Under the pieces are notes generated by a model, which did not search any database, was not told the origin of the DNA, and saw nothing but the letters and a program-made list of their open reading frames with translations. Below, piece by piece: positions 1,678-62,437 of a stretch of 64,000 nucleotides of DNA (within the stretch, counting starts at the first letter, position 1; each line of letters opens with the position of its first letter). This DNA is from Cyanophora paradoxa CCMP329 (Eukaryota > Plantae > Glaucophyta): NCBI GenBank assembly GCA_004431415.1, contig QPMI01000434.1, positions 248,001 through 312,000 of the forward strand, read 5' to 3'. Made by a program: the position numbers and the translations under genes.

Positions 1678-3909
1678 CTATAGAGAGAGGAGGGACGGGG
1701 GGAGATCCTGGCGGAGGGGGATGCCAGCTCGTGCACCGGGCTTGAGGCACTTCTGCCCCGCGACGAACGAGCCGAGGGCCATCACCTGTGCACGCACACG
1801 CGCGCAGAGCCTGAGCCGCTGAGCTCGAGCCTGAGCGCAACCGGGTACCCGTGACCCCATCTGATTTCTAGAGGGGATATATCGATAGGGGCATCCCGGG
1901 CCTGAGCGGAAGCTTGAGCGCGCCTTGGCGGGGTGGAAGCCGTGGAGGAGGCCGAAGATGAAGGCCCCGATGTACGCGTCCCCGCACCTGCCCGGCCATA
2001 GGCCTTAGCTTAGGGCCCCACTCGAAGCTCATCAAGTGCGGACCCCGTCGTGTCGACCACAGGTCCCTGCGCGGCGCGGCTCGATTGCGGCGCATGGGGC
2101 GTGGGCATGCTATGCAATGAAGGGGCGGGGGCGTGCCTTGAGAGGCCACACGGGGCACTCGATCAGTCCGAAGGGCAGGTGCGTCCCGTCCGTGGGGCAC
2201 GCGTACATGCGCCCGCGGGCCTGCGCGCGGGCCGCTGATCGTGAGCACGGCAGTGCGGGACGGCAGCGCGGGCGGGGCGGCCGGGCCTGGAGCGGGGAGG
2301 CGGAGGGGGCGGAAGCCACGAGCGACTCCAGGGCGGCCTGGTCCCGTACCCCCGGCCACCAGTTCCCCTCCGGGTCTGCCCCCACCGGCCCGTTAAGAGG
2401 GGAAGGGGTTAGGGAGGGGTACCACGCACCTGGCGTGGTGGCGGGCGTAGTGGCGGGCTTCTCGGCCGGGGGCGTCGACGGCCTGCGGGGCCGGCGGTCT
2501 GCGGCTGCCGCGGCGCGGGCTCGAGCGGCGCGGCCGCTTCGAGGCTTCTATGAACGAGCGAGTTGAACGCCGCTCTTATACGCTTTCCCATAAGGCCCCA
2601 CGCACGCGCGAATCATCATCGTGGAGCCCTGCGCGGCGCCATGAGCGGCGGGGAGGGAAGGGGGCGCGGGCCCGGGGGGGCACCTCGGAGCCGCGGGTGG
2701 TGACGAGTACGCGCACGCGGCCGCACATATGCATCAGCGCGTGCATCGCCGCCTGCGCCGGCGGCTCGCTCGCCGGCGAAGGGGCGGAGCGGCGGCGGGG
2801 CGGGGCGGGGCGGGGCGGAGGGGCGCGCCTCGAGGGGGGCGTCGGCCAGGCCCGTCATCTCGTGCGGGAAGGTCGAGCTCTGAGGAGGGAAGGGGGAGGG
2901 AGGGGGCGACAGAGGGGAGCCTCAGTGCTGCCCCCCCCCCCCCCCCCCCCGGGGGGAGGGTACGGGAATGAGAACGGACGGTGACGATGTAGTCGGCGTG
3001 GGTGAGGAGGAGGGCGAGGAGGGGGCGGTCCTTCTCGGCGTCCACGACGACGGGCACGCCGCGCTCGTTTGCCCACTGCGCGAGCTGTACCGCCGCCGCC
3101 GTGTGCCGCCCGTCGAGGTGCAGCACGTCCGCCCCGTCCAGGATGCTGCGGTGTTTCTCACAGGCTCAGACAGTGAGTGAGTGGGGCAGCTGGTTCGGAA
3201 CAGCGGGCCTGGGGCTCAGCTCCGAGGCGAAGTACTCCTGTGGGGCGCAGGTCAGTCCCTTCGGCTGCGCGGGGGCGAAGCGGGGGCGGCGGGCCTCGGT
3301 GGGGGTGTGAAGGCATGTGCGCGTGAGCGTCTTCTGGTCCACGATCACATACGTGAACGCCGCCGGGATAGTCTGTGCGCGTCCGCCGCGGCCGGCCCCA
3401 TCAGCGCGCGCGCACTGAAGGATCGGAGCGGCTCAGCGGGCCCGGTCCGGCGCGCCTCCTTTACGACAACAAGGCTCGTGTCGATCCCTTCGTTCACCAT
3501 CAGCTGCAGCGTCTCCTGCCCGATCGCGCCGCCGCCGAGCTTCGTCACCATCTTGCACTTGCCGACTCCGAGGCGCTGCGGTCCATTCGTCAGCGTGCGG
3601 CAGCCGGCGAAGGCGCCGATCCGTCCGACCTTGAGCGCTGTGAGCGTGTTCCCGCAGTTGCCGCCTCCCTGCGCGCGCAGCTGCGGTGGGCCACGCGCGG
3701 CGTTGCGGCGGACGGCGCCAGATAGGGCACCTGCGTCTCAAAGCTTTCTGTCCTGATTTTGGCGTCCGGCTTTGGGTACTGCGCCACAGCGGCCACGTAC
3801 TGGGCGGAGCAGTCAAAGTGCGCAGCGGCAGGTGCAGGGCGGGTCGCAGCCTAGCAAAACGCACGTCGAGGATGCTGGCGCCAAACCCGACGACCGTCTT
3901 GCCGGCCAT
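1678..3909 (-). CDS. PfkB/ribokinase-family carbohydrate kinase (multi-exon)
   Basis: Spliced peptides MAGKTVVGFGASILD, GGNCGNT, FTYVIVDQKTLTRTCLHTP, LHLDGRH...VVVDAEK, VTTRGSEG, and the C-terminal PfkB signature VVDTTG|AGDAYIGAFIFGLL; stop at 1678. Confidence 0.9.
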
Positions 3910-4085
3910 TTCGATAGCCAAAGATCCGCGCGCTCAGTTCTAGCGCACCGATGATGCCGCTCACAGACTCCCCGCGCACTGTTCTTGCGCTGGCGCTGGT
4001 TTCGTTCCTGCGGTCCCGCGGACAGTGCGCGGGACTGTGCGGCGTGTGTGCGGCGGTGTGCGCCGACTTGGGGGTAGAAGTTCAA

Positions 4086-17574: not shown

Positions 17575-20209
17575 ATGACGAAGCCGCCCAAGCAGGTTGG
17601 CCCACAATTCGTATTTAAGATCCCGCTACAGATTCGGCGCGCCGATCATGAGTTCGTGCACAGCGCCAGGCATAAGGACCGTGAGGCGAGGTGGGAGCGG
17701 CGTCGGGGCGGCTCTTGTTCGGCCCACTGCAGGGGGATGGCCCGCATTGATCTGGAAGAGGAGGAGGTGCATGCGCTCGCCGATCCCGGCCGGGGCTTGT
17801 CGCAGGCCCAGGCCTAGAACTTAAGGGCTCTTTTGTTTAGTCGCCTATGCTTCAAGGCTTCTCGAGCTCTAGGCCGGACGCTCGAGTTTGCCGGAGCTGG
17901 AACACGTTGCTTGCGAGGGATCGGACTAACCGCCGCCGGCGCGCCCCAGGAGGAGGCCTTGCGGCACCTGCAGCGGATCTACGGCGAGGTGGACAGGCTC
18001 AGCCACCTCCGCTGGAGCCACAGGGAAGGGGACGAGGTCCGCGCGAGCTCCCCAGCACCTGCACGGCAGGCGGCTGACCGCGCGCCGCGCGCAGTGCGAG
18101 GGCGGGCTGCGCAGCGCGCGGGCAAAGCAGACGCGGAAGCGACTGCTGAGGCTGGCACGGGAGGAGGAGCTGAACGGCAGGGTGCGCTCCGATCGGGGGG
18201 CCCCGCCCGGCCCGAGGTCGCGCACAGGGCCATCGAATCTCGCTGCGCGATCACCGGCAGGTCTCGCAAGGGTACGGCGAGATGACACTCTCCTCGGTGG
18301 GCGAGCTCCTGGCGTGGCTCTCGGAGCCGCCGGAGGAGTTCCGCGCCGCAGGGCTCGCGCTCGGCAGCGACTCCACCTTCGTCGACATCGGCTCGGGATT
18401 CGGCAAGGTCCGGGACGCCCAGTGGCCTCGCATCGAATCAAATCGAATCGAGGTGACGCGCGAGGGCGCTCAGGTGGTCTTCCACGCGGTGCTGCAGTGC
18501 GACGTCAAGGCCGCGCACGGCGTCGAGTACGTCTCCTCCCGCGTCGAGGCCGCCGAGAAGGTCAAGCGCAAGTTCTTCGAGGCAAGCGCGAGCTCGCCCC
18601 GCAGTGCCGGCTGGGCGCGTGCTGACGCGCGCGTGCGCGCAGGAGTACGGGGACCGGATCCGGTTCTTCGCGGGGGACGCGAACCTGCGGCCGTCGTTCG
18701 ACTACACGCACATCTACATGTACGACCGCATCTTCTTCGAGGAGACCTACGAGGTCCGAGTCCGACCCGCATTCGATCCCGCCCGCTCTTCGAGGTCTGG
18801 GAAGAGATCGGGTTCCCGCCGCGCAGAAGCTGTGCCCGAAGCTGGAGGAGTCGGATTTCTCCGTGCTCGTCTCGTACCGCGACACGGCCTTCCTCCGCCG
18901 CTTCGGCCTCCTCCACATCGACCTCATCCACAAGGCGGGCGGCCGCGTTTGAGGGCCGAGGGGTCGAGCCTTGGCTGACGCGGCGCGCGCGCAGATGAGC
19001 CTGCGGAGCACGGGGCGGCAGAACTTCACGGCGTACATATACCGGAAGAAGCAGGCGCCGCGGGAGGAGGTGCTCGCGGCGCGGGCGGAGTGGCGGCGGC
19101 GGCGGCAGGCGGAGCTGGAGGCCTCGCCGCCGAAGCCGAGGCCGAAGGGGCGCGCGGTGGCGGCGGCCGCCAGCATCCTCGCCCGCATCCAGCACGCCCA
19201 CGGCCAGCGGCCCCCGCACGCCCCGCCCCCGCCCCGCGCGGCCTCCAGACCGCCGTCAAGGCTGCCGCCAGGCGCAGCAACAAGCTCAAGCCCGCCACCC
19301 CGACGCCTCGCTCCAGAGGCGGCTTCAGCGAGCGAAGAGGGAGGCAGCCGCGGCGGCGGCGGCGGCAGCGGCGGTGCAGCGGCGGCGGGTGGCGGGGGCG
19401 AAGGCGGCGGGGCGGGCGGGGCGGGGCGGGGGCCCCCGCCCTCGGCGAGGGCTCGGGGCGTCCCAGAAGCGGCCGCGCCCGAGGCCGCTGGAGGTGCACT
19501 GGCGGCGCCTGAGGCGGCGCATCGCCGAGGGCTGGGGCGTCGCACCCCCCGACGCCCCCGGCCTCCCCGGGCCCGTGGAGGCGGAGGAGGAGGGGGGCGC
19601 GGGGCGGGGCGCGGGGCGGGGGGTACCGGGCGGCTTCGTGGAGCGCCTCGCCTTGGACGCGGGGCCGGGGGCGCCCCGAGCCCTGCCGACGTCGCCTCCC
19701 TCCCGGGCCGCTCCGCCGCCGACTTCCTCGCCTGGGAGCTCTTCGGGCCCCCGAGCCTCCTCGACGCCGCCCTCGCCGCGCCCCGCCCCCGCCCTCCGTT
19801 CGCACGGGCGCCTCGTGGGCGGACGCCATCCTTCTCTGCGGCGACGAGAGCGGCGACGACGAGGAGGGGGGGCGGGCGCGCCCGCCGGCCCCGCCGCCCG
19901 CCCCGGCCCCACCCGGCGCCGCCCCGCGAGCCGGGCTTCGGCCCGCGCCCTGCCGCCCCGCCCCCGGTCTTCGGGGCGGGGCTCGCCCCGCGGCGGCCGC
20001 CGGGGCCGCGGGCGGTGGAGTGGCAGCGGGGGGCGGGGCGGGGGCCGGTGGCGGGGGGGTGGGAGAGCGGGGAGAGCGGCGACGAGGCGCTCCCCGAGGG
20101 CCTCCTCGCCTTCCACGACTGGCCCCGGCCCGCGGGCGACGTGTCGGGCACAGCGGCGTCCTTGCGGGTCCCTGAGCCACCGGCCCGGGCACGGGCGCGC
20201 CTCCCCTGA
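17575..20209 (+). CDS. DOT1: DOT1-like class I SAM-dependent histone methyltransferase (copy A)
   Basis: YGE, STFVDIGSGFGK|VVFHA, AHGVEY, FDYTHIYMYDRIF; long low-complexity C-terminal tail with apparent frameshifts. Confidence 0.75.
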
Positions 20210-45873: not shown

Positions 45874-48118
45874 TCAGGGAGGGACGCCGCTAGCTGCAGC
45901 TGCGGCTGCGGCTGCCGGCTCGCGATCGCGCCCCGACCAGAGGGCGCGCTGCAGGCAGGCGGGGAGGCGAGACCGCAGCGCCTGGGACCCGAGCCCCGCG
46001 TCCGCATGGCGGGGGCCAGCTCCTTCTCCATCGTCCTCGCCCCAGTCGTGGAAGGCGAGGAGGCCCTCGGGGAGCGCCTCGTCGCCGCTCTCCCCGCTCT
46101 CCCACCCCCCCGCCCCCGGCCCCCGCCCCGCCCCCCGCTGCCCCCTCACCGCCTCCGGCCGCGGCGGCCGCCGCGGGGCGAGCCCCGCCCCGAAGACCGG
46201 GGGCGGGGCGGCAGGGCGCGGGCCGAAGCCCGGCTCGCGGGGCGGCGCCGGGTGGGGCCGGGGCGGGCGGCGGGGGCCGGCGGGCGCGCCCGCCCCCCCC
46301 TCCTCGTCGTCGCCGCTCTCGTCGCCGCAGAGGAGGATCGCATCCGCCCACGAGGCGCCCGTCGGGGGGGCGCTGGGGGCGCGCTTGTCGCCCAGAGCTG
46401 CGGCCAGCACGCTGGGCGACGAGTAGAGCTCCCAGAGGAGGAAGTCCGCCGCGGAGCGGCCCGGGAGCGACGCGACGTCGACCCAGGTCGGGGGGGCGCC
46501 CGCCCCCGCGTCCAAGGCGAGGCGCTCGAGTCTGCTCCCGGCCTTGTGCCGCGGCTGCCGCGCCCACTCCTCGTCCACCTCGCCCAGAAAGCTCGCGGAG
46601 ATGCGGCGCGGTTTCCTGCGAGGCTGCGGCTCGCTCGGCTTCTCTCGCCTCATCTTCTTCTTCGTGGCCGCGGCTGCAGCCGCTGCCCGGGCCCGCGCCG
46701 CCGCCACCTGCGCCCTCCGCGCCGCTGCGGCCGCCGCCAGCTGCGCCCGCCGACGCGACTCGCTCGCGGCTGCGACGGAGACGCCGCTGAAGGGCCGGCG
46801 GGGCGCGGCGCTGCCACCGGCGTGCGGGTGGGTGACATGAACTACTGGCCGGGCGCGCGCGCGCTGGAGAATGTCTGCCGCCCGGATGCGCGTGGCGGTT
46901 GGCGGCACTGGCGGCCGGCGTGCGGCAGAGATCGGCCGGGGCGGCGGCTCCGGGCGGTGCTTCGCGAGCCACGCCGCCTTGGCAGCCGCAATCGCCTTGC
47001 GCGAAGCGAGGCGCTTGCGGTATATGTACGCCGTAAAGTTCTGCTTGCCCGTGCTCCGCATGCTTATCTGCGCGGGCGCGTGTGAGAGGAGAGGGCCTGG
47101 CGGGACGAATTTAGAGCGGGGACCTTGTGGATAAGGTCGATGTGGATGAGACCGTGCTTGTGGAGGAAAGAAGGCTCCCGGTACGAAATGAGTATCCGAA
47201 ACGACGAAGCCTCCAGCTTCGGGCAGAGCTTCTGCGGGGCGCCGTCAACCACGGCGCGAGGAACGGGCGGGATCGAATTCTACGCGGCGCGCCACGTATG
47301 TGTCCTCGTAGAAGATGCGGTCGTACATGTAAATGTGCGTGTAGTGGTCAAAGTTCGCACGCGTCGTCGCGTCTGCCAGCTCGAAATCAAGCTCCCGGCT
47401 CCGCCCGATGTCCTAGGCGAAAAACGTTCGACTGGGCGGCGCGACAGCTGCATAGTTCCGGGATGGGGCGGACCGGGAAGAACTCCGCCTTCAGCTCGTC
47501 GGCGGCGCTCACGCGCACCGAAACGTACTCGATCCCGTGCGCGATCTTCACGCCGCACTGCAGCTTTGCGTGGAACACAACCTGGCGGTCGCATCGTTAG
47601 CGTTGTCATTTTCAATTTCGAACGCTTTCCGAATTCAAATTTGAACCTTGCCGAAGCCGGACCCAATGTCGATGAAGGAGCTGTCCTTACCAATGCGCGC
47701 CCATTCCCCCAGACCCTGCAGGTATTCGAACATCTTTGAGACGGACCCCATGGTCATCTGGAGGCAAACATCGGTCAGCCCTAATCGATTCTTGCATTGC
47801 AAATGGCAGCTGGAGGCGCAGACCTCGCCGTAGCCCTCCGACACGCGCCCGTAGTTCTTTTGCAGCTTTTCGAGGTGCTTGCGTCGCAGTTCAATCTCGC
47901 GCTCGTCACGGACGCGGCTCAAAGGCGTGTCGCCTTCGCGGTTCATCCACATGAGTCCCTGCCGAGCGCAGATGAGCTTCACCTGCAGCGGAAATGGGCT
48001 CGCCGACGCACTCCCTTCTGATCCAGCTTCTTGTAAATGAGCTGAAGCATGTCGCGCGGCCAGCTGGGCTCAGACTGCGGCTTTCCCGCCTTCGAGGAGT
48101 GCGGTGAGCCGTCGCCAT
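45874..48118 (-). CDS. DOT1: DOT1-like histone methyltransferase (copy B)
   Basis: EGYGE|MTMGSV, SSFIDIGSGFGK|VVFHA, AHGIEY, YTHIYMYDRIF, STGKQNFTAYIYRK. Confidence 0.78.
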
Positions 48119-56339: not shown

Positions 56340-57429
56340 ATGGCTCGGGAAGGATGCAGCGTGATGTTTGTGCGCGGGGCGCCGTCGGGTTTTCTCTCCC
56401 GCCCTGCTTCGCGTTGACTGGCAAGCTGCAGGAGACTTCGCTCGGCAATGTGACATGCGAGCTGTACTGGAAGCACGCGCCGAAGGCGTGCAGGAACTTC
56501 GCGGAGCTCGCGCACAGAGGATATTACAACGTGCGGGTCCCGCGTAGTAGCGAGAAGCCAGCGCTAGCGTCTAGCTGCCGTGCTCCCGGCGAGCAATCTA
56601 TCTCCTGCATGATCGTTCGATGATTAGGCTTTCGTCACAGGACGCGCCGCCGCGCATCTAGCCTGTATCTCTTTCCGCCACGCGGAAGCTCGTGGCTCAT
56701 TTGCTATGCGCAGGGCGTTCCGTTTCACAGGATTATCGCCAATTTCATGGGTGCATACCCTCATCAGCCCAATGCACTCCATCAGGCTAATGCTCGCTTG
56801 CCTTCTTCTCGCAGTGCAGGGAGGTGTGGATGAAGACACGTTCCATGTGCGGTTTATGTCTACTGCTTATCCGTTTGCAGGTGATCCAACGGGGACGGGC
56901 CGCGGCGGCGAGTCTATCTACGGGAAGGCATTCGAGGATGAGATAACGATGCAGCTGAAACACACGGGCGCCGGCATATTATCCATGGCGAACTCGGGGC
57001 CAAACACGAACGGATCGCAGTTCTTCATCACTCTAGCACCATGGTATGTGCCCCGCTCGCCCAATGTCCTGGATTGCATACAGTGCCGTCTACCTCAGAT
57101 GCTGTAGTGCCCTCGTGCTAGTGTGCCCTCTACCACACTAGAGTGCCAGTGCACTCACATGCTGCAGCCCGTGGCTGGATGGAAAGCACACCATCTTTGG
57201 AAGGCTCAGCTCCGGTATTGGAACCCTCCAGGTTTTTTCCTTGAACTTTCTCTTCCTCGACTTTTAGCTGACTTGGTTGTGCCACGCACAGCGGCTAGGT
57301 TCAGTTGTGACAGACAATGACGATCGCCCAATTGATACAGTGAAAGTTCGTATTCTATATATCACTCTCTATATCTGCCCAGCCTTTAACTGTAGGATCG
57401 GGCAGATCATACGGGCACAGATTGTCTAG
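56340..57429 (+). CDS. PPIL1: Cyclophilin PPIL1-like peptidyl-prolyl isomerase
   Basis: [31 protein letters not shown]|[52 protein letters not shown]. Confidence 0.93.
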
Positions 57430-57560
57430 GATTGTCTGAATCATCATCCGGGGATTGTCTGAATCATCATCCGGGGATCGGGGAGAAGTTCGGATCTCTG
57501 CGTGGGGCTGTCAGGGGATCCGGATGAGCCCCGGGGGACGCGTCAACATATTGAGCATGA

Positions 57561-57673
57561 CTCCCTCAGGGCACCAGTCCCTGCGGGTTACGCTCTCACC
57601 CAAACAGCACGGGTACAGTTAAAGCGCTGTAGGTAGGAGGTCCGGCGCGCCCGTAGCGTAAAAAGAGCATGAA
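57561..57673 (+). ncRNA. Stand-alone copy of 113-bp element (candidate Fanzor omegaRNA scaffold / ghost locus)
   Basis: 110/113 identical to 61941-62053; no Fanzor coding sequence nearby. The repeat is certain; the RNA role is inferred. Confidence 0.5.
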
Positions 57674-58085
57674 TCCCCGGGGGGAACCGCACATGTGTAG
57701 CCCACACAGCCGTAGGTCACAGACAATCGGATGCAGCTAGCTAGCCGCTAGCTTTCGTGTCTATGCTGAACGCACAGTAGCTATAGAGCTGTACCCGTGC
57801 TGCCCACGCCCCGGTGACGCCCGCAGCTGCAGGCCCGAGCGCTAGCGCTAGCTAGGCCCATCGGCGAGCGTGATCGTTACCGCAGCATTTGTTTACCGCA
57901 GCAGGTGTCAGGCAGTGATTCGGACTCCGGCGGTAACGCGGGCACCGGGCGAACTCGGACTGCGATCTGGGCGTCTCAGGTGCTAGCGCAATCGAATGAA
58001 GATGTCGCCGCGCCCCGCGCGCCTCCCTCTAGCTAAGATTTCAGCGCTTTCGATCTCGTTAGTCTCACGCGCCGCGCCTGCGCAG

Positions 58086-60340
58086 ATGAAGCGTGCAGCC
58101 GCGAGATCTAGCGCGCCGGAGAGATCGAAGAAGATAGCGAAAAGCGCAAGAACCTCTGCCCCCGCGCCGAAGTCGGCCGCAAAGCGTACGCGCGCGCCTC
58201 CGCTCGAGATCGCGCTCTGAACGCCACTCGACAGCGCGTGCGGTGCCTTCTTCGGCTACAAAATCTTCTCTCTTGAGCGAGATTAACAAGTTCCTTGATC
58301 CGAAGCCGCAAGGCACGAACCCGGCCGCTCTCTTATCTACTTGGGCTTATGAGCGCACAGAGGCTGAAGAGGACGATGTATTTATGGACGGTGCCAGAAT
58401 CGTCGGCCCGTTTGACGAGGCCGACAGCGAGCCGCACGAGGACGACAGGTATTTCTGTGCCGTTTTTCTTGGGTGGCTGTCCCTGACTGTTGTTTGCAGA
58501 CCCTTCTCCGCCCGCCTACGCCGCTCGAATCTAGACGAAGATCCGAAGTATGCTGGTCAGAGAGTCTCTCGCGCTCAACTGCAGTCCGGTGTGTACTGCG
58601 ATTATCAATGTGTTGTTTTCCTGTCTAATGTTCCAAAGATGACAGCGAGGCCTCTGGTGGGGCCCACGAGGACGATGATGAAGCTGTAAGCGGAGCCCGC
58701 TTCCATACTCTTTCTACATGATCGACTTTTATGCAGGGGGAAAGCTTCGGATCAAATGAAGACGATGGGGAAGCGATGCCTGGTCTCGATGATGATGACA
58801 GTGATGAAGATGACAGCCATGATGAAGCCGAGGAGGGTTCTGGATCAGAAAAAGCATCAGCATCCCAATCGGATACGGATGTGACGAAGCACGACAAATT
58901 GTCTAGCCAGCAAGCTGAAGAGGATGCCACTCAAGTTTTTGGAGGCCAGGGTCAGGATGATGCAGATGCAATGTTCGAGAAAGCCAAGAATGTCAAGAAT
59001 CAGCGAGTGCGTCAAATATTAAAATTCGTCTCACTCAACACTTATTTTGCCAGCGCAGTTCCTGCAGGATCAGTTCTTGGATCTGCGTATTCGTATGCAG
59101 AAACTGCTTGCAGCAGCAAATCAGTTCCCACAAGTAAGTTTTCTCCAGCTGGGTCGCTTTTAATGAGCTTTCAAGCCGAATCAGGTCACGGGGCACGAGA
59201 TTTTCACGAAGCATTCTCAAGAAGTTGCACATGCATTCAAGGAGTCCAGTGACGCCATCCAAGGACTTCTTCGTGACATGTTCGATCTGAGACATGTGCG
59301 ATATCGTCTTTCCTTGTAAGCAAGAAATTTCTGCTCACGCCACTGGTTAGAGTCTGGCTCGGCAAAACAACGATCTGCAGTCTGCTTCGGATCCTCCTTC
59401 TGGTCCTTCTGGTCCTTTTGGCCTTTTTGTTTGTTGTCAATTGACTATCGATTTCTTTTGTGCAGCCCCATTTTCCATTGACGATGCATGGACTCACATT
59501 GAGGAGTGCGCTTCCAGGTTCGCATAATGCTGCATTGATGTTCTGGGCGTAATGTATTGATCCCTCCATGCAGCTTCAAAGCTTTTCAGAACGAAACAAT
59601 CGACAAATGGAGTCGAAAAGCTCAGCTCGCAAGCGCTTTGGGTTCCATGTCAAACATGAAGGCTCTTAACCAGGTTAGACTGTCTCGAACGGTTTCCAGA
59701 AAGTGACGTAACACAACTCGGGCAGAGCATTGTAGCACAGATTGAGAACATCCTTGCTGACGAGCAGCGATTGGTCAAGCGGACCCAGCTCAAGCGGTCT
59801 CAGTACAAGATCTTTGGAAAGGTGCTTGATCTCTCTCTTTTCAGGATGATTTTGTCGTGGCCGACACCAGCAAAAGAAGGAATCTGGTGCAATTCAAGAG
59901 CAGACAGAACATAAGAGGGATCAACATCTTCAGGACTATGACGAGGAGGTGTTCGATGACACCGACTTCTACCAGACTCTAATCCGCAGCTTCATCGAAT
60001 CCTCCAATGACCTAATGACCAACTCAAGTAAATTCCAGCCCATGTATTTGCCATTGATTGCTAGGTGATGCCTGGTGCAGGTACTCCGGAGGACTGGTCA
60101 AGGGCGTTCATTGCAATGCGCAACCAACAGACAAAACAACATCGACTAAATGTAGATCGAAAGGCAAGCAAGGGTCGCAAACTGAGGTGCCTGACACGCA
60201 TTCTCGTCATGCACAACACTACCCTGATTTCTTATTGCAGGTACGAGGTACAAGAAAAGCTCGTGAACTTTATGGCCCCTGTACCAGAAGGCGAAAACCT
60301 TGTCTCGTCTGGGCTTTTGTCCTCGTTATTTACTAGCTAG
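58086..60340 (+). CDS. AATF: AATF/Bfr2 (TRAUB) ribosome biogenesis protein
   Basis: LDLRIRMQKLL..ANQFP, FRNETIDKW, RLVKRTQLKRS, VFDDTDFYQTL, VDRKASKGRKLR|YEVQEKLVNFMAP. Confidence 0.92.
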
Positions 60341-60394
60341 CTGTATAGTTAGCAACGTTTTTGAGAGCGATTTTACGTTGGGGTGAGCATTGGG

Positions 60395-60817
60395 ATCAGA
60401 GTTGCGATTACGATCGGAATCAGAGTTGCGATTACGATCGGAATCAGAGTTGCGATTACGATCGGAATCAGAGTTGCGATTACGATCGTAATCGATATCA
60501 GAGTTGCGATTACGATCGGAATCAGAGTTGCGATTACGATCGGAATCGATATCAGAGTTGCGATTACGATCGGAATCAGAGTTGCGATTACGATCGGAAT
60601 CAGAGTTGCGATTACGATCGTAATCGATATCAGAGTTGCGATTACGATCGTAATCGATATCAGAGTTGCGATTACGATCGTAATCGATATCAGAGTTGCG
60701 ATTACGATCGGAATCAGAGTTGCGATTACGATCGGAATCAGAGTTGCGATTACGATCGGAATCAGAGTTGCGATTACGATCGGAATCAGAGTTGCGATTA
60801 CGATCGGAATCAGAGTT
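60395..60817. repeat. Tandem array: 16 units of ATCAGAGTTGCGATTACGATCGGA (11 of 24 bp, 5 of 30 bp)
   Basis: Direct reading. Confidence 0.95.
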
Positions 60818-60849
60818 ACTATGTTATAATTAACGTTGCGATTACGACG

Positions 60850-60992
60850 TCCAACTTTCGTCCAACTTTCGTCCGACTTTCGTCCAACTTTCGTCCGACT
60901 TTCGTCCGACTTTCGTCCAACTTTCGTCCAACTTTCGTCCGACTTTCGTCCGACTTTCGTCCAACTTTCGTCCGACTTTCGTCCAACTTTCG
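60850..60992. repeat. Tandem array: 13 x 11 bp TCC(A/G)ACTTTCG
   Basis: Direct reading. Confidence 0.95.
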
Positions 60993-61598
60993 AATTCGTC
61001 CAGCCTCCATTCTGCCGATGGGCACGTGCGCACTCCGGGGAGGATAACTGGTTCTTCCAGAGAGCCCACCGGAGAGCCCGCCACGTGCGCGTGCAGCCGC
61101 GTGCCGCGTGCCTGCGGCAGAACCGGTTCTTGTGGGCCGGGCGAGCGTCCGCCGCGCGCGGCTCGCAGTTCGTCATTCGAGAAGGGCGTTCTGCGGTTCT
61201 GCGGTGGCGATGGAAAGGTCCGCCGCCGCCTCCGCCTCCGGCGCGCGCCTCCCTCCCGCCGCCCTTTACGCCGGCCCCGCAGACGTCGAGGGAGGCCCCG
61301 CCGCGGTCCCGAGTCCGCACCGGATCCCGTGCGCCTCTGCCGTCTCGCCCTTCGCCGTCTTTCGCTCATCCTCCTCGCAGGGCGAGCCGCCTGACGGGTC
61401 GCGGGGCGCCGCCGGCGCTTCGCCGGCGCCGTCGACTGCTCCTGCGGCGCCTATGGAGCTCGGCGGGGGATACTCGGCGACAGAAGCGGCCACGGCGGCA
61501 GCGAGCTCTATGTGACGATATTGATGAGATGGGGTACATCGTATACAACCCCGAATTCGTGCCCCCGGGGCTTGTATACGATGTACTTGCAATTTCAG

Positions 61599-61910
61599 AC
61601 ACGTGCGGCAAGATCAACTACGGGCTCGGCTCGAAGAGGGTCTTCGAGTGCCGCCCCGGGTGCGGCTTCCGGGCGGACCGCGACGGCGGCGCCGCGCGGT
61701 GCGTGTTGTGTCTATACACGCCTATACACAATCGCTGCTCCCCCCGCCTAGTCCCGACACGGCCTAGCCACGGCATAATTTTCCGTCTAGGCCTAGGGCC
61801 GGCTCGCCCCTCCCAGCGCCGCCCGATCGCAATCGTAATCGTACTCTTGCAGGAGCATCTTCATCCGCTACGGCACCGGCGTGGACGCGAAGCGCCTGCT
61901 CGGTTCGTAG
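61599..61910 (+). pseudogene. Fanzor2/IS607-TnpB C-terminal fragment (zinc ribbon + RuvC-III), two exons 61599-61698 and 61853-61910
   Basis: Spliced peptide TCGKINYGLGSKRVFECRPGCGFRADRDGGAAR|SIFIRYGTGVDAKRLLGS* fits C..CG.....LG....F.C..CG...DRD..AARNI; GT-AG intron 61699-61852; RuvC-I/II not found. Confidence 0.8.
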
Positions 61911-61940
61911 CCAGCTAGCGCTAGGCTCCGATCCCCTTTT

Positions 61941-62053
61941 CTCCATCAGGGCACCAGTCCCTGCGGGTTACGCTCTCACCCAAACAGCACGGGTACAGTT
62001 AAAGCGCTGTAGGTAGGAGGTCCGGCGCGCCCGTAGCGTAGAAAGAGCACGAA
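61941..62053 (+). ncRNA. Candidate omegaRNA scaffold / right end of Fanzor element
   Basis: Starts 31 nt after the Fanzor stop, is repeated at 57561, and has nested stems (CAGGG/CCCTG; TACGCT/AGCGTA; ACGGG/CCCGT; TACAG/CTGTA). Confidence 0.55.
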
Positions 62054-62437
62054 CTTTGGAACTTTGGATGCTGTGGCCCTGTTTCCATGGGCCCATGCCA
62101 GCCCACTGAGTACTAATGGCCATGGCCCAGTGGCACAGGTGCGCGCGCCCAGGCCTGTGGTACACGGACGTGTCTTCTGCCAGCCCGGTACCAGTCCCCC
62201 TGACGACCACACCGGTACAACCCAGCCGAGTACCCGCCACCAGGAGGCAAAGCCGCTGATCATGAGCAAAGGCAGGCGGCAGCGGAGGGCCGCCGGGCAT
62301 CCTGAAGGAGCAGCTGGCGCTGCAGATGAGCGCAGCCGAGTCGCTTAAGCACTAGCTGGATTGCACGATGTAGAAGGAAAGGACACCAAAAAAAGGGTCG
62401 CGATCGTGATTGGCATGTGAGACAACGAGAGCATTTA

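Follow-up and report, generated by a model that had tools for sequence, protein, structure and literature searches.

The Fanzor and pro-Fanzor clade is defined by a DPG motif and a shifted glutamate (PMC10711439), and the catalytic triad of the mimivirus Fanzor2 (ApmFz2) consists of D324, E467 and D501 (PMC11832414). Fanzors with introns have already been published (PMC10530073): CRe-1/2/3 of Chlamydomonas (CrFNuc) are intron-containing Fanzor1 genes on Helitron2 (PMC3627910, PMC10530073), whose copies are often cut short on the 5' side but keep the 3' end, with target duplications of 7-19 bp that follow a fixed motif (Bao and Jurka 2013, PMC3627910), and it was tentatively suggested that Fanzor cutting contributes to such duplications (PMC10288648). 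Omega loci without a nuclease have been published for the Fanzor1 of Spizellomyces (Saito 2023, PMC10432273), and in bacteria TnpB promotes transposon retention in IS200/IS605 elements, with TnpA performing the excision (Meers et al., PMC10055086). In other algae, both spliced Fanzors and copies reduced to the tail have been described before; we found no report in the literature of Fanzors in Cyanophora, and the three papers that mention Fanzor as well as glaucophytes deal with different topics.

Here we describe a Fanzor2 tail, the main copy, that lies in a 64,000-nucleotide stretch of the Cyanophora paradoxa genome (the window). We consider it highly probable that the main copy is a dead, 5'-truncated member of a young, high-copy, intron-containing family of Fanzor2 elements. 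Taken alone it is a transposon remnant, and it serves as the marker of a glaucophyte Fanzor2 family that is young and spliced.

The main copy and its parent family

The DNA of the window is GC-rich, has many introns and is eukaryotic in character. The main copy is flanked by an AATF gene and, on the opposite strand, by a GPN-type GTPase gene, and the spliced host genes in its vicinity (cyclophilin, AATF and the GTPase) place it in a eukaryotic genomic context. Its coding part is made up as follows:

61604 to 61698, plus strand: last-but-one Fanzor2 exon, 5'-truncated (PF07282; 32 of 32 residues as in gene model P0014)
61699 to 61852, plus strand: in-phase spliceosomal GT-AG intron of 154 nt (splice joint in RNA-type runs)
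61853 to 61910, plus strand: last Fanzor2 exon, 18 residues and a TAG stop (18 of 18 residues as in P0014)

An earlier note on this DNA had read here a peptide and an in-phase intron, and we recover both, with a reading frame from 61601 and a stop at 61908-61910. All 50 residues encoded between 61604 and 61910 are identical to the C-terminus of P0014, a Cyanophora paradoxa gene model of 1,087 aa; the first exon keeps three of the four zinc-ribbon cysteines, and the codon of the RuvC-III aspartate is 61682-61684. Sequence searches were done per exon, the spliced product being seen only as the database protein P0001. The sole profile match of the first exon is PF07282 (TnpB/Cas12f zinc ribbon; E 1.5e-4), which lies under the curated cut-off because the exon is a fragment. 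When compared with 1.84 billion proteins, this exon gave four near-identical matches, all of them EukProt gene models of Cyanophora paradoxa. One of the four, tig00020614_g12213, includes the AATF exons of the window, which probably belongs to that contig. A homologue search with region 250-292 of the 360-aa ORF gave no match, a result that its length filter makes uninformative.

The intron is about threefold longer than the introns of the neighbouring AATF gene (154 against ~50 nt), and its 3' part holds, near the branch region, a motif like the 24-mer repeat described below, in inverted orientation (61815-61850). The predicted splicing is confirmed: three runs of RNA type (X15, X16 and X18) contain Logan contigs with a joint that removes 61699-61852, and the DNA run (X1) has none. 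That the three are RNA runs is a guess, yet 14 host introns on the list are likewise removed in them; any family member could be the source of the joint. A single RNA contig spans the joint with the junction-specific sequence 61500-61602 attached and probably comes from a second locus that shares the junction.

The earlier note had taken 61599 as the start of an exon. However, RNA contigs run across 61500-61632 and 61500-61697 without a splice joint, and in other family copies the DNA upstream of 61603 stays coding (EAWTSKTCGV) and holds no intron, the main copy diverging at that point. Given that no joint crosses 61598 and that the coding sequence continues in the family DNA, the left edge is a truncation junction and not an exon start. 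The break near 61603 falls inside the first CxxC and removes the first zinc-finger cysteine. Since RuvC-I, the catalytic glutamate and one zinc ligand are missing, the main copy is unable to cut DNA; as judged from its sequence, it is a dead, 5'-truncated Fanzor2 copy from which no nuclease would be made, in keeping with the non-autonomy proposed before.

At least 14 Cyanophora gene models in EukProt share the same C-terminus. Among the family, P0014 (tig00000342_g24202) has an intact triad, D613 (VIDPG), E1028 (VCEAW-TSKTC) and D1064 (DRD), that aligns with D324/E467/D501 of ApmFz2, its DPG and glutamate aligning also with P0018, and the best PDB match of P0014 is this mimivirus Fanzor2 (ApmFz2/ApmFNuc, 9b0l). 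The PF07282 scores of the family models (38.8-45.2 bits) are above the cut-off, and in NCBIfam IS607_TnpB outscores IS200_TnpB, both far under their cut-offs. The closest outside relatives are DPG/shifted-Glu proteins, several of which adjoin MerR-resolvase (IS607 TnpA) genes. Taking into consideration (i) the motifs, (ii) the best PDB match and (iii) the MerR-resolvase neighbours of the relatives, we file the family as Fanzor2, which agrees with the assignment made earlier for the tail; by its predicted proteins the family is provisionally placed with IS607 TnpB and pro-Fanzors rather than with Fanzor1. P0014 is a predicted gene model of a full-length Fanzor2 with putative RNA-guided, TAM-dependent cleavage, and the proposal that the genome hosts a spliced family of RNA-guided nucleases, predicted to be of Fanzor2 type, is supported by the shared C-termini and by the triad of P0014.

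Two residues after the RuvC-III aspartate, the Cyanophora family has a glycine, while 27 of 34 relatives have an asparagine; this glycine was considered as proof of a dead family and rejected, given that the relatives vary there too. P0014 also carries ~300 extra low-complexity residues after RuvC-I and before the bridge helix, and all scores in a protein atlas search with its N-terminus were below 0.9. An IS607 TnpA serine recombinase was looked for at the main-copy locus and not found, and the protein patterns searched for were absent from viral contigs. In a metagenome contig, L001, the closest outside relative, an intron-less Fanzor2 of 586 aa (2139-4027), is followed by a 128-nt, neatly multi-hairpin tail that ends in AGCA; it is a compact candidate for experimental testing.

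The non-coding right end

Past the stop codon, and overlapping the end of the reading frame, the following features are found:

61886 to 61908, plus strand: candidate stem-loop with loop TGCTC at 61897-61901 (4 of 1000 shuffles; proposed after PMC10711439)
61911 to 62049, plus strand: non-coding right end with terminal GAGCA, candidate omega-RNA scaffold (fixed end; DNA depth)
62050 to 62070, plus strand: single-copy flank, candidate guide if the tail becomes an omega-RNA (unique DNA contig)

The right end measures 139 nt from the stop to the terminal GAGCA at 62049, and in DNA contigs diverse flanks start behind 62049/62050. Sequence of the ORF end is joined ahead of 61920 in 7 DNA contigs and in 4-5 contigs per RNA run, so that peptide and tail are associated elsewhere in the genome as well. 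Because nothing intervenes between ORF end and tail in other copies and the flanks diverge behind 62049/62050, the natural unit is this stretch of 139 nt, and not the self-complementary element of 113 nt, 31 nt past the stop, that had been delimited previously. The 113 nt merely reflect how far a shorter copy at 57561-57673 overlaps the tail, and the self-complementarity is not above chance: the 113-nt piece folds with z = +0.23, 111 of 200 shuffles folding as well, and longer versions of the tail have z values from -1.0 to +0.8 relative to shuffles. An omega-RNA scaffold may start within the ORF, near 61880. A scan with Rfam gave only chance miRNA/snoRNA matches, on the tandem arrays and within AATF, and none for the tail, and the alignment-based fold of the tail draws on only 3 independent sequences.

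Among IS607 TnpB and Fanzor2 RNAs, a pseudoknot is conserved (PMC10711439). In the main copy, the loop TGCTC is complementary to the terminal GAGCA (62045-62049), which 4 of 1000 shuffles match, but competing folds bury the loop. The tail weakly resembles that of L001, where AGCA lies 128 nt past the stop (z 3.2; 1 of 200 shuffles; L001 second of 64 loci), a likeness that is only suggestive of an omega-RNA. The candidate pseudoknot, the likeness to L001 and the weakly similar end of a second repeat family at 57774, which also closes with GCA, are weak signs in favour of an omega-RNA. From its position and its fixed 3' end, we consider it plausible that the right end is an omega-RNA source, in which case 62050-62070 would act as the guide. 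The DNA contig from 62022 onward is unique, with a depth of 210. No target for this putative guide was found within the window, and the DNA pattern of the tail was absent from metagenome and viral contigs.

Copies, left junction and mode of spread

A second copy and three segments left of the main copy bear on how the family spreads:

57553 to 57677, plus strand: second, shorter 5'-truncated copy (57566-57669) within a target duplication (97% over 113 nt)
60390 to 60992, no strand assigned: tandem arrays of a 24-mer and an 11-mer in high copy, perhaps the left portion of the insertion
60993 to 61499, plus strand: low-copy sequence resembling a gene start, in frame with the tail (ATG 61210; GT-AG intron 61329-61380)
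61500 to 61602, plus strand: non-Fanzor sequence fused to the tail at two genomic loci (hairpin; DNA depth; gene models)

The summed DNA depth rises from 1x (61374-61499) to 2x (61500-61602), ~19x over the exon and intron (roughly 20x single copy for the intron in contigs of the DNA run) and ~100x over the tail, where the values are sums over Logan contigs and hence rough, not true copy numbers. Other gene models of the family are broken at several different points. This heaping of copies at the 3' end, together with the retention of the intron, points to one-ended copying of DNA.

The short copy is 97% identical to the main-copy tail over the 113 nt of overlap and does not include the candidate pseudoknot loop. 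It lies in a 13-bp target duplication (57553-57565 and 57665-57677; 12 of 13 matches) that begins with GAGCA; the duplicated 13-mer has no occurrences in the window other than those at 57553 and 57665, and the flanks of the copy are unique in DNA contigs. Around the main copy, no target duplication was found. Directly behind the short copy, another repeat family has its right end (57670-57774), with a fixed end in GCA and diverse flanks; it bears a weak likeness to the Fanzor tail (2 of 1000 shuffles, the ends having been picked by eye) and is possibly a second Fanzor subfamily and the insertion site of the short copy. Elsewhere in the window we observed an exact 23-nt tandem duplication that starts at the cyclophilin stop codon (57429-57478) and an inverted duplicate of ~1.4 kb (18701-20122 and 46042-47345; 75-96% identical, piece by piece); a DOT1 methyltransferase match near it is weak (E 0.005).

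Just left of the truncation junction there is a near-perfect 53-nt hairpin (61534-61586; z -5.9). DNA contig depth is 452 for 61500-61632 as against 194 for 61374-61529, and the junction peptide is common to two gene models, on tig00020554 and tig00020614; the unit 61500-62049, with ~100 nt of non-Fanzor DNA, thus occurs twice in the genome. Further left, the sequence 60993-61499 showed no likeness to P0014; in the DNA run 61238-61529 is on single-copy contigs, while 60993-61240 is low multi-copy. The arrays occupy 60395-60830 and 60848-60992, with TGAGCA just before them (60384-60389); other DNA contigs join them to Fanzor intron and right-end sequence, and the same 24-mer stands before another truncated Fanzor2 tail (gene model P0002). 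At 60741, 61034, 61115 and 61807 the letters of the window disagree with every DNA contig there, probably through errors of the assembly. Over 60344-60380 it is two RNA runs that disagree with the window, and the DNA run agrees with it, which probably reflects another strain or allele.

From what is known of the family, a full-length protein would bind an omega-RNA formed by the right end and ~20 nt of flank, and would cut DNA behind a short motif. The anatomy of the copies suggests that DNA-level copying would begin at the right end and halt early, and that a later round would run past the old break, leaving the unit 61500-62049 present twice; the main copy would at most give an omega-RNA in trans through its transcript. 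As to what starts the copying, we tentatively favour, at somewhat less than an even chance, a Fanzor-made break behind GAGCA followed by aborted repair from the right end of a donor, which would account for the motif, the length of the duplication and its mismatch; this reading draws on one duplication and on the retention logic of bacterial TnpB (PMC10055086). A helper of Helitron2 type, which has been suggested for Chlamydomonas, is only somewhat less probable. A Replitron carrier was also considered and rejected, none having been reported in glaucophytes (PMC10288648).

The Fanzor-made break could be carried further, to a family that spreads without any transposase by aborted homing of the Fanzor2 RNP, which we think unlikely. 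The RNP would cut near-matching sites behind GAGCA, the far end would invade the right flank of a donor, and the element would be copied leftward with an early stop. The products would be 5'-truncated, intron-retaining copies in which the duplication spans motif to cut and its right half comes from the donor flank (compare the one mismatch between 57553 and 57665). If this were true, every copy with a whole scaffold, including the main copy, would add a guide, and the insertion signature of Chlamydomonas, open since 2013, would be accounted for.

The strongest alternative for the locus itself is that 60390-62049 is a single insertion, a non-autonomous element with its own left and right ends that later suffered an internal deletion; the left end would consist of the arrays and the start of the element gene, and a transposase would move the element between GAGCA motifs in IS607 style. 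Consistent with this, GAGCA is found directly before the arrays (60385-60389) as well as at the right end (~1% chance per 10-nt window), other DNA contigs connect the arrays with the right end and the intron, the 24-mer also precedes the truncated tail of P0002, and 60993-61240 is low multi-copy. However, the single-copy state of 61238-61529 shows that the composite was not multiplied as a whole, the upstream ORF is unlike P0014 and no transposase was found at the locus, so that we rate this history as possible though a good deal short of probable. It is compatible with the truncated-copy reading if the main locus was the donor of the second copy from 61500 on.

The main copy might instead be maintained as a 'ghost' guide locus that provides full-length Fanzor2, through its transcript, with an omega-RNA whose guide is specific to this locus. 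Its predicted scaffold is whole, candidate pseudoknot included, the single-copy part 61381-61529 of the middle exon is present in RNA contigs of two runs, and the ghost omega-RNAs of Spizellomyces are functional (PMC10432273). Nevertheless, recent spread alone accounts for about 100 near-identical ends, the neighbouring short copy is without the pseudoknot loop, the RNA depth of the tail is not above the level expected from copy number, and the putative guide finds no target within the window; such maintenance is therefore improbable.

It is very improbable that the locus is a functional chimeric gene, in the form of either an AATF-Fanzor fusion (gene model tig00020614_g12213, 57996-61910, in EukProt, with AATF exons fused to the Fanzor tail) or a 164-aa spliced ORF from ATG 61210. 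A frame of 164 codons is indeed open from 61210 to 61910 across three exons (introns 61329-61380 and 61699-61852), and the upstream exon starts at the 61381 acceptor in RNA contigs. However, AATF is covered by RNA contigs up to about 60424, one of which runs through AATF's own stop, an end that the fusion model omits; we rejected the fusion, which is probably a mistake of gene prediction. Moreover, the zinc ribbon of the product would be incomplete, and with a tail 100% identical to the mobile family, selection has had no time to leave a mark. Typical products of LINE action lack 5' sequence, keep the 3' end and lie in a target duplication of variable length. A retroposed copy, made by LINE-type reverse transcription of a Fanzor mRNA, would thus fit the truncation, the intact 3' end and the duplication at the short copy, but is largely refuted by the intron kept in DNA (in the main copy and ~20x, the DNA run having no intron-less joint) and by an element end without poly(A), and is extremely improbable.

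Comparison with known systems

The locus defines the right end of the family exactly (GAGCA, 62049) and supplies candidates for the scaffold and the target motif; the family offers about 100 natural insertions usable for a TAM assay and for testing transposase-free spread. The Cyanophora family shares with known Fanzor2 (ApmFz2/ApmFNuc 9b0l, MmeFz2, NlovFz2) and with cyanobacterial IS607 pro-Fanzors the DPG of RuvC-I, the shifted glutamate before a TSKTC zinc finger, the RD of RuvC-III and a conserved non-coding right end past the stop. It differs from known Fanzor2 by a spliceosomal intron in the RuvC-III region, by the long insertion in the 1,087-aa parent model, by glycine in place of the usual asparagine after the last aspartate and by having no IS607 TnpA at the locus; the main copy consists of the last 50 residues only. 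An autonomous IS607 element carries TnpA and makes no target duplication, whereas here no TnpA is found at the locus and the short copy has a 13-bp duplication.

The retention logic of TnpB (PMC10055086), applied to Cyanophora, would make the right flank the guide, and a cut behind the TAM would favour retention of the element; we found no account there of aborted one-ended copying that reaches new sites. Like the ghosts of Spizellomyces, the Cyanophora copies have a right-end omega-RNA region (a candidate one here) without a working nuclease gene, but the ghosts keep both inverted repeats and a conserved body of ~550 nt, while the Cyanophora copies are ragged 5' truncations. The likeness to the CRe elements of Chlamydomonas extends to an intron-containing algal Fanzor, frequent 5' truncation with intact 3' ends, target duplications behind a short fixed motif and extra copies of the omega-RNA region only; the CRe elements, however, encode Fanzor1, have a TTTT motif and end like Helitron2 (a Fanzor borne in this way would have ends similar to those of a RepHel-coding Helitron2, with asymmetric terminal inverted repeats), whereas the Cyanophora family is of Fanzor2 type, with a motif that is apparently GAGCA and no Helitron link found.
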